From assembly GCA_037379345.1 (NCBI GenBank), contig CM074517.1, positions 3,844,001 to 3,908,000 on the forward strand: a stretch of 64,000 nt of DNA, written 5' to 3'. Source of the DNA: Perna viridis (lineage: Eukaryota). The notes under the pieces were generated by a model that did not search any database, was not told the origin of the DNA, and saw nothing but the letters and a program-made list of their open reading frames with translations. Shown here piece by piece: positions 13,665 through 60,615 of the stretch; position 1 is the stretch's first letter; every line of letters begins with the position of its first letter. A program made the translations under genes and the position numbers.

Positions 13665-16600
13665 CTGAAAAATACACAAAACAAACTGTAAACCAGCAAA
13701 ATTTTGCAGTTGATAGTGAAATCTGTTAAGTGAGCATATTCTCAGCTATCAATTTTTGCAGTTTTATAGAATGCTAAGCTTATCTGTCCTTCACATATAT
13801 ATAGTGCAAATTAGTTTAATTGAAAACAAAATACATTAACAGTAAACATAAATTAAATCTGGGAATTTTGAGACTTGCAATGTGGTCATGTTACTCATAT
13901 TTCTGGTTTATGTTTGATTACACTATACTAGTTCTAAGTTATATACATGGTTTAAATTTCTACCTGTGTGGAAATACGGTCTATAAAACGATACTTTTCC
14001 TGATCATTGTCTAATTGTAATGGTGTATATTAACCAGCCATTGATAATTATGTATAATTTGTTACGTTTTCTGCATGTATCGATTTTCTAAAACCTTCAC
14101 AATAAACATACACCAGAAATTTGTTGTTTTGTTGAAAGTCTTTAACCTAAAAGAGTCTCTCATGAAAGGTTAAAGGGTAAAATCTCAATCAACTTACACA
14201 TATATATCCAAGGATTTCAAACTCAAGACACACAAAATTTTGATAAACCACAAAAATTGATATCCATAAAACAGCATGTGACAGTACAGTAACATACTGG
14301 TATCACTAGATACACATATCTACACATGTACAATAACTATAATAATGGACAAAAAACCTATATGTATGGTTCAATGTGTCTCACTAAAATTTCATAACCA
14401 GTTAATGTTCAGTACTCTTACTTTGTCATTTCTATAAATAAAAATGTAAGATTCTCTCCTGATTTATCCTGAGGTAATGAAATTCACTCTCGACTTACAC
14501 TCTCCTGATAATGAAATAAAAGGTAAGGGGATTATCTCCTGACTTGCATTCTCCTGATGATAAAATTAAAGGTATTGAGATTCTCTCTTCACATACACTC
14601 TCCTGATGATAAATTAAAGGTAATGAGATTCCCTCTCCAATTACACTCTCCTGATGATAAATTTAAAGGTATTGAGATTCTCTCCTGACTTACATTCTCC
14701 TGAAGATAAAATTAAAGGTATTGAGATTCTCTCTTCACTTACATTCTTCTGATGATAAAATTAAAGATAATGAGATTCCCTCTTGACTTACATTCTCCTG
14801 ATGATAAATTAAAGGTAATGAGATTCTCTCTCCAATTACACTCTCCTGATGATAAAATTAAAGGTAATGAGATTCTCTCTTGACTTACATTCTCCTGATG
14901 ATAAAATAAAAGGTAATGAGATTATCTCTTCACATACACTCTCCTGATGATAAATTAAAGGTAATGAGATTCTCTCTCCAATTACACTCTCCTGATGATA
15001 AAACTAAAGGTAATGAGATTTCTTCTTGACTTACATTCTCCTGATGATAAAATTAAAGGTAACGAGATTCCCTCTTGACTTACTTTCTCCTGATGATAAA
15101 ATTAAAGGTATTGAGATTCTATCTTCACCTACACTCTCCTGATGATAAATTAAAGGTAATGAGTTTCTCTCTCCAATTACACTCTCCTGATAAAATTATA
15201 GGTAATGAGATTCTCTCCTGACTTACATTCTCCTAATGATAAAATAAAAGGTAATGAGATTCTCTCTTGACTTACATTCTCCTGATGATAAAATAAAATG
15301 TAATGAGATTCTCTCCTGACTTACATTCTCCTGATGATAAAATAAATGGTAATGAGATTCTCTCTTGACTTACAATCTCCTGACGTAAATAAATGCTGCA
15401 ACAATAATCAGTACAATTACGACAGCACCAACCACAACTCCTGCTGTTACTGCACCAGCGTTGATATTACTGGGTGATGACGAGGAACTAGATCTAGAAG
15501 CTCCAGCAACAGGAAAACCAATGTTACCTCCTCCTATAAACAGTTTAGCATTATTACTACCAAACAGGTCAATATTGGAATGAGGATGTTTAATTTTACC
15601 ATGTAAGAGTTTTTTGTTTCATTTAAATGGTAGAAAATTTAACAAAAGTCACAAGGATCAGCTCCTGGAAGTTCAAATTTTGCAGTGAATAATTCTAATA
15701 ATATTACAAAATGTATACTCGAAGAGAGTAATACAGTTCATAGTCTACAACTTATCTTTCAACTTACATGTTGCATTTTTTTTTTAAGGTTCACCATTAC
15801 CTTTCGACAAATATGGTCTAAATTTCACAACTAATTTCTCTCTGACAACAGACAAACCTGTGTATCTAGAAAATTTTTAAGGCATAGCGTTCCCTAGATA
15901 TAAAAAAACTTACATCAAGTTTATGTAAAATTATATAAAAAACTGATCTAACTTTTGCAGGGTTAATTTTTTCCAATTATGCAGAGAGTGCAAAAATTAA
16001 CAAATACCTGAGATTTACTTGATATGGCCCACTCATTTACACAGTTTAAATCACCTATTGTGTATAAGTGGCTATTGCCCTTCTATTGACCAGCATGTCA
16101 ATGTGAATAGAGTTTACCTTTAATACATAGGGAACATCTCAAAACATCATACAGATTTAGTTATTTTGGCCTCTCTGCAGAATTGATAAAATTAAAACAG
16201 CAGAAGTCAGGCCAGTTTTTGATATAATTTTACATAAAATGAATGCAACTTTCTCATATCTAGGGAATGCTATACCTTGAAATTCTTCTAGATACACAAG
16301 TTTGTCTGTAGTCAGAGGGAAATAAATGGTGAAATCAAGGCCATATTTGTCCAAGGTAATGATGAACCTTAAGATCACATAGTATCTTATTTCAAACAAG
16401 TAATTTCAGAATACAGTGGAACTTCATTAAGTTGAAATCAATAGGACCAAAGAAAATCTTCAGTTAACTTGATGCTGGATGAATTCATGTTTACTAGATT
16501 CAGGTTCATCCTAGTTTGAGTTATCAGAAGCAAAATTATACTGGGGTAGAAGGTATTTTGTTGGGACTGATAAAATAACAAGATTGATTCCAGTTTTCAA

Positions 16601-60615: not shown

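Follow-up and report, generated by a model that had tools for sequence, protein, structure and literature searches.

Minisatellites at exon-intron junctions

Minisatellites that repeat an exon-intron junction have been described in single human genes. In intron 7 of human F7, the junction is spanned by the first monomer of a 37-bp VNTR (Borensztajn et al. 2006, PMC1557585), which occurs in 5-9 copies, takes in 4 nt of exon per unit and carries the weak donor gugggu (PMC1557585). Its pseudo-donors, identical to the authentic donor, are functional yet silent, the most upstream site being the one that is selected (PMC1557585). Further human cases include IFI6 (6-16) intron 2, CBS intron 13, LMNB2, and PDGFA intron 4, in which minisatellites with 15-25 copies or with units of 81-100 bp also have the junction in the first unit (PMC1557585). 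LMNB2 and PDGFA use only the authentic donor; IFI6 and CBS additionally use the two pseudo-sites nearest to it (PMC1557585). A related proposal, the Rogers model, holds that introns are gained when an exonic AGGT segment is duplicated in tandem (Hellsten et al. 2011, PMC3265369; PMC4974935). In the literature that we searched, no claim of an excess over chance was found for the human single-gene cases, nor, within its incomplete coverage, did we find a genome-wide or invertebrate description of such arrays or a claim of donor excess.

The 64,000-nucleotide stretch of Perna viridis DNA analyzed here (the window) comes from a 49.7-Mb contig (3.84-3.91 Mb) of a 723-Mb assembly, and is AT-rich (~32% GC) and dense in minisatellites. 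Self-comparison of its open reading frames revealed two families of exons on the minus strand, each encoding one half of an SRCR domain, the first or the second. These belong to a single long gene, hereafter the host gene, with the following main features:

13585..60615, minus strand, host gene, 45 exons in the window, with its 5' end beyond 60615
60615 down to 23478, minus strand, SRCR region, 33 half-domain exons giving 17 SRCR domains
15533-15374, minus strand, TM exon, preceding a short tail exon
ending near 13585, minus strand, short tail exon, as read from the sequence

On the 3' side of the SRCR exons there are four or five YWTD/LDLR-B exons, followed by EGF (LRP2-type), Sushi, HYR, Sushi, and Sushi exons. 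When the exons were searched singly, Pfam matches were obtained to SRCR (4e-15), Ldl_recept_b (8e-8), HYR (1e-19), Sushi (2e-9), and EGF_LRP2. This domain make-up suggests a putative immune receptor. A comparison of the HYR exon with representative proteins yielded no orthologue of the host gene, the matches being dominated by multi-HYR proteins with 30-42% identity. Two studies provide spliced RNA contigs (8899 and 7777 nt) that fit the exon borders exactly between 26747 and 21016; the host gene is therefore expressed, and this part of the gene model is sound.

The original prediction was that seven introns of this gene open with tandem copies of the end of the upstream exon and its donor, and that the arrays differ in unit size and age. 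All seven arrays are present at the places noted, as seen by Tandem Repeats Finder (TRF), by eye, and with a junction probe, and differences in both unit size and age were apparent when all of the arrays were compared. The probe consisted of 37 nt (25 nt of exon and 12 nt of intron) and was aligned to the 700 nt of its intron next to the junction; the null came from the other introns (null maximum score, 19). The arrays are as follows:

59751..60481, minus strand, array 1: unit 48-54 nt (~47 nt of SRCR exon end and 7 nt of intron); exon ends at 60434; probe score 35
49955..52230, minus strand, array 2: unit ~76 nt (~50 nt of exon and ~26 nt of intron); exon ends at 52166; probe score 28
45255..45520, minus strand, array 3: unit 59 nt (~24 nt of exon and 35 nt of intron); exon ends at 45492; probe score 29
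26590..26760, minus strand, array 4: unit 30 nt (12 nt of exon and 18 nt of intron); exon ends at 26747; probe score 23
21995..22280, minus strand, array 5, decayed: unit ~55-60 nt (~36 nt of exon and ~25 nt of intron); exon ends at 22237; probe score 19
20849..21047, minus strand, array 6: unit 35 nt (26 nt of exon and 9 nt of intron); exon ends at 21016; probe score 31
14472..15390, minus strand, array 7: unit 49 nt (~10 nt of TM exon and 39 nt of intron); exon ends at 15374; probe score 24

On the minus strand, each of the seven arrays starts within the exon, and the sequence that joins the exon end, the donor, and the beginning of the intron is then repeated head to tail; the boundary of exon and intron is contained in the first repeat unit in all of them. 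Per unit, the upstream exon contributes its final 10-50 nt and the intron its initial 7-39 nt, with the donor at the joint, and the breakpoints are scattered relative to the donor. The exon ends at 26747, 22237, and 21016 were set by the RNA contigs, and the other four are predicted from SRCR family alignment, reading phase, and GT/AG. TRF called six of the seven arrays, namely array 1 (59751-60481, 54 nt x14), array 2 (50937-52129, 76-78 nt), array 3 (45255-45520, 59 nt x4.6), array 4 (26604-26758, 30 nt x5.2), array 6 (20849-21047, 35 nt x5), and array 7 (14472-15390, 49 nt x18.8); array 5 was missed by TRF and is visible by eye and by alignment of the junction probe.

Likeness among copies is 75-90%, depending on the array. 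Array 1 contains 14 CTG/GTAAGT sites (exon/intron), the real donor included, and GGTAAGT is intact in 14/14. The 11-12 copies of array 2 are broken by two later insertions of dispersed repeats. Array 3 (donor AAG/GTAATA) has about 5 copies that are 77% alike, array 4 about 5-6 copies, array 5 (donor TGG/GTAGGT) 4-5 copies, and array 6 5 copies. Array 7, which sits in the last intron, has about 19 copies, 11 of them with an intact GTAAGT. Intact donor copies are found in arrays 2, 4, and 6, and eroded ones in arrays 3 and 5; the donor has been lost from many copies of arrays 2, 3, 5, and 7.

The two insertions in array 2 are copies of dispersed elements:

51240..51730, dispersed 491-bp element in array 2; many chromosomes carry full-length copies of 89-90% identity (8906 first-look candidates), and the window has an inverted copy at about 42663-43067
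50020..50930, dispersed 911-bp element in array 2; many chromosomes carry full-length copies of 83-89% identity (1955 first-look candidates)

Array 2 must therefore be older than these insertions and is no artefact of assembly. An assembly artefact was rejected for the decayed arrays and for this transposon-interrupted array.

As in F7, the authentic donor of each array in the host gene is followed by pseudo-donors, and F7 uses the most upstream site only. By contrast, F7 is a single locus, whereas the host gene has seven, with 10-50 nt of exon per unit and mostly the strong donor GTAAGT; copy number reaches about 19, compared with 5-9 in F7, and the arrays recur across the genome, as discussed later. 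The DNA read runs that cover this region all derive from one sample. IFI6, CBS, LMNB2, and PDGFA are likewise isolated cases in a large genome, whereas the host genome shows recurrence. The structure itself is thus known from single human genes, and what is new here is its recurrence and its bias toward donors. What is shared with the Rogers model is the copying of splice-signal sequence at an exon edge by a small tandem duplication; unlike in that model, the introns of the host gene pre-exist and the copies lie inside them. The affected introns occur at the standard positions common to the 17 SRCR repeats, as is also the case for the YWTD and TM exons. Because the positions are shared by the 17 SRCR repeats, the affected introns existed before the copies, and intron gain by tandem duplication does not apply here.

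Donor excess in the host gene and across the genome

The junction scan covered a table of 44 exons, was blind to how the arrays had been found, and counted each array once. Seven of the 44 donors were positive (scores 19-35), and these are exactly the seven noted beforehand, compared with 1/44 acceptors (21184, score 28). As an intronic baseline, 59 of 2618 37-mer probes from introns of the same gene scored as high (2.25%, one count per array). Donors are therefore ~7-fold above this baseline (binomial P = 5.4e-5 for 7/44), and acceptors are level with it (donors versus acceptors, Fisher P = 0.029). Three further donors, at 58690, 34928, and 19956, have a score of 15 (P = 0.0045 for three such scores), and may be relics of old arrays. 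Amplification also favors strong donors, as GTAAGT is found in 5/7 amplified donors and 8/37 others (P = 0.017), so that 5 of the 13 GTAAGT donors of the host gene bear an array. The GC content of the units was considered as a cause of the donor excess and rejected, since units of 35-45% GC are not enriched and only those of >=50% GC are. The main statistics are drawn from one gene, where both the donor excess and the bias toward strong GTAAGT donors are genuine.

The single acceptor-side duplication of the original prediction also proved to be real:

21167-21275, minus strand, acceptor-side duplication: unit of 52 nt x2.1, comprising the end of the intron, AG, and the first 16 nt of the exon; probe score 28

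Transcripts enter the exon at 21184 through the exon-proximal copy of the duplicated acceptor. The eight other TRF arrays in the host gene are purely intronic, and these internal arrays lack strong donor motifs. The favoring of donors over acceptors was thus borne out (7 versus 1 of 44 each), but the filter offered to account for it, which would tolerate donor duplications and purge only those at acceptors, fails, as donors lie ~7-fold above baseline and acceptors at it. A single acceptor case at the intronic baseline leaves a purge of acceptor duplications unsupported, and donors that stand above a neutral intronic baseline cannot be accounted for by a neutral tolerance filter alone; a donor-specific factor is needed.

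We then considered the whole assembly, counting sites with three motif copies spaced 20-50 nt apart; these are counts of motifs without gene annotation. For each motif, the count is given with that of the same motif read backward:

GGTAAGT (donor): 1253 triplets; backward-read control, 571
GAGTTAG (same-composition control): 199 triplets; backward-read control, 330
AGGTAAGT (donor): 360 triplets; backward-read control, 140
TTTCAGG (acceptor-like): 764 triplets; backward-read control, 484
TTTTCAGG (acceptor-like): 223 triplets; backward-read control, 69

Spaced GGTAAGT triplets are 2.2-6.3 times commoner than those of three same-composition controls (571, 199, and 330). Counted singly, the 7-mer GGTAAGT occurs 73,317 times and its reverse 115,168 times, so that the excess of triplets per occurrence is 3.4-fold. 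One dispersed satellite-like family, to which many of the TTTTCAGG arrays belong, accounts for some of the acceptor-like counts and thus inflates them. On contig 1, 25 GGTAAGT arrays were counted in 46.7 Mb, and the comparison loci in 72.6 Mb number 18 for the reversed control, 3 for GAGTTAG, and 17 for TTTCAGG. A 200-kb sample of the genome held two candidate donor-bearing arrays only, too few for a test.

Among 12 distinct AGGTAAGT arrays inspected with their flanks, at least five begin where a coding exon of an unrelated gene ends, and one more starts at a likely short exon. The exons concerned encode an ILEI/FAM3 domain (7e-8), ankyrin repeats (3e-10), and, in two cases, long open frames; a thioredoxin-like WCGAC exon at one array has a match of 0.002, below Pfam's cut-off. 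Occurrence beyond the host gene, which the original prediction had left to a genome-wide comparison, is thus upheld by the GGTAAGT triplet excess over three controls and by the at least 5/12 sampled AGGTAAGT arrays that lie at coding exons.

Could dense minisatellites simply touch donors by chance, with those that resemble exons being the ones that get noticed, or could the assembly be at fault? Array density is indeed high, with about 15 arrays in the 46 kb of the host gene and ~10% of intronic bases in arrays by present-day coverage, and selection on the exon part of the first unit may prolong the detectability of an array up to about 2-fold. Against this, the blind probe scan gave 7/44 versus 2.25% (P = 5e-5), the genome-wide excess holds over three controls, and decayed arrays and an array interrupted by transposons are incompatible with an assembly error. 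This reading is largely refuted, and we consider it very improbable.

Donor use and the fate of the later copies

The original prediction held that the arrays would form banks of decoy or alternative donors, and proposed that mapped junctions would show which copies are used. In the region 20800-26800, RNA contigs from two independent studies use the first donor at 3/3 arrays (26747, 22237, and 21016); at array 6, for example, the contigs run to the exon end at 21016 and continue from 20613. None of them splices from a downstream donor at these three arrays, though contigs drop rare variants, and with only 74 and 98 raw RNA reads placed in two runs, isoforms that are rare or subject to NMD may have been missed. 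That the spliceosome takes the most upstream donor is therefore shown, at the contig level, for three arrays, and is inferred for the other four.

According to a frame analysis, splicing from any later donor copy would lead to a frameshift or an in-frame stop, with one exception: the second donor of array 4 (26747), +30 nt, keeps the frame and would add 10 amino acids. The repeat period is divisible by 3 in 2/7 arrays. Because nearly all of the later donors would give a frameshift or a stop, the arrays are no source of protein variants, and the notion of a bank of alternative donors for protein isoforms was rejected, since at the three arrays covered the contigs contain the first donor only and all decoys but one shift the frame or meet a stop. 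Use of decoy donors, if any, would mostly feed nonsense-mediated decay.

The later copies might still serve in other ways. Sense intronic U1-binding sites can work apart from splicing at the site itself, protecting transcripts against premature polyadenylation (telescripting, the U1-PAS axis); for the arrays of the host gene, U1 binding is only a candidate reason for retention. If the arrays were functional banks of U1-binding or decoy donors kept by selection, they might act in exon definition, in suppressing premature polyadenylation in AT-rich introns, or in tuning expression through transcripts with a premature stop. Such a role would fit with the preference for strong donors, with the premature stop that follows nearly every decoy, and with arrays that have lasted long enough to gather transposon insertions, and proximal pseudo-sites are used in human IFI6 and CBS (PMC1557585). 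It would also fit with array 1, where 14 donors are perfect while other positions vary: array 1 alone keeps its donors, with 0/126 changes compared with 50/603 elsewhere in the unit (P = 1e-4).

Across five arrays, however, changes are as frequent in the donor motif as in the remainder of the unit (0.086 vs. 0.100 changes per site, P = 0.42), and conservation of the donor motif as a sign of selection was rejected, as there is no overall signal. That the copied donors are no better kept than the unit overall is a mild argument against selection on the copies. In addition, the donor is gone from many copies in arrays 2, 3, 5, and 7, use of downstream donors was unseen in the RNA contigs, and there are internal arrays without strong donor motifs. 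Maintenance of the arrays as banks of donors by selection thus seems improbable.

Origin of the arrays and significance

The arrays are probably donor-anchored minisatellites of the kind seen in F7 intron 7, which would have arisen by small duplication and expansion and persisted under a first-donor rule with biased retention. A small tandem duplication across the exon-intron junction would have been the start, followed by expansion through slippage or unequal exchange, and arrays would arise repeatedly because the genome is rich in minisatellites. The first unit would keep the real exon end and donor, and later units would become intronic pseudo-donors. As the copies are removed with the intron, they would cost little, their tolerance presumably depending on the first-donor rule. 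Duplications internal to exons would mostly not be tolerated, and those that span acceptors are expected to be riskier. The donor excess would then result mainly from biased retention, in that strong first donors alone would keep splicing correct, and the extra U1-binding sites might possibly be mildly favored.

Alternatively, the excess may reflect birth rate and not retention, if strong 5' splice sites are hot spots of duplication. An example of such a route would be polymerase pausing or RNA-DNA hybrids at a U1-bound transcript, with error-prone repair in the germ line. Donor-focused mutation of this kind would be consistent with donors at 7-fold over baseline while acceptors are at baseline, with the preference for strong GTAAGT donors, and with the genome-wide excess of spaced GGTAAGT triplets; the copied donor motifs are not specially conserved, as would be expected of neutral by-products. 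On the other hand, the scattered breakpoints, which keep no fixed distance from the donor, are a mild argument against it, and the mechanism is undocumented in the literature searched. We regard it as rather unlikely, though it is a serious rival. The data do not separate biased retention from a special duplication mechanism, and we lean to biased retention, the special mechanism being the less likely of the two.

A stronger statement can be put forward only tentatively: in this lineage, strong 5' splice sites may be ~7 to 17 times likelier than neutral intron to seed and keep minisatellites, possibly through splicing- or transcription-coupled duplication or through selection on U1 sites.

If strong splice sites do seed arrays in this way, the genome would contain hundreds to thousands of natural tandem-donor arrays. 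Until now, junction-reiterating minisatellites were known as oddities of a few human genes, and the scanning model of 5' splice-site selection ("first donor wins") was based on them. For annotation, such arrays are traps for gene predictors and short-read assemblers. Recurrent arrays that vary in unit length, copy number, donor strength, and age would provide a set of natural experiments, which could test how the spliceosome chooses among identical donors, and could show whether decoy donors feed nonsense-mediated decay and whether splice signals bias the birth or survival of tandem repeats.

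Donor-motif arrays elsewhere in the genome

Arrays built on donor motifs were also found outside the window, in the genome assembly G000 (a slash marks the predicted exon–intron boundary):

L016:4100-4490 (contig C5, 12.0 Mb; from a random 200-kb genome sample): array of seven 53-nt GAA/GTAAGT units
C1:68673098-68676353: array of 58-nt units containing over 50 perfect copies of AGGTAAGT

The former follows a putative micro-exon of 17 nt whose acceptor is good, and the latter is the largest donor-motif array among the matches listed.

Intronic repeats and RNA signal

The introns of the host gene also carry other repeats. 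A 491-bp dispersed element, present genome-wide in thousands of copies at approximately 90% identity, occurs twice in the gene, in separate introns and in mutually inverted orientation (42663-43067 and 51240-51730). In addition, an intronic tandem duplication of approximately 142 nt at 30900-31180, which was not reported by TRF, was detected by open-frame self-comparison together with the baseline probe scan.

Very high RNA depth was observed at 23790-23946 and 22460-22660 in every run and on both strands. Loose ends are numerous there, and one opposite-strand joint (22482/23921) is present. Both patches are probably expressed dispersed repeats that lie in introns, outside the host-gene mRNA. 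The RNA contigs X1 and X5, placed over 23492-26800, contain joints that go back and other odd joints linking SRCR exons, and one of their loose ends matches 60480-60509. Because the 17 SRCR repeats resemble one another and are collapsed in short-read RNA assemblies, exon order is unreliable in contigs of this kind.

Further candidate donors in the host gene

For the YWTD exon starting at 20613, there are two candidate donors of identical phase, separated by 15 nt:

20503-20519, minus strand: ATG/GTATTG and CAG/GTATGG

When 37-nt junction probes (25 nt of exon, 12 nt of intron) were aligned to their own introns, with other introns serving as the null, weak single extra copies of the upstream exon's end plus donor were recovered at three positions, each with a probe score of 15 (empirical p 0.009):

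58569-58601: weak extra copy
~34660-34694: weak extra copy
~19550-19581: weak extra copy

These copies may be relics of three additional donor duplications.
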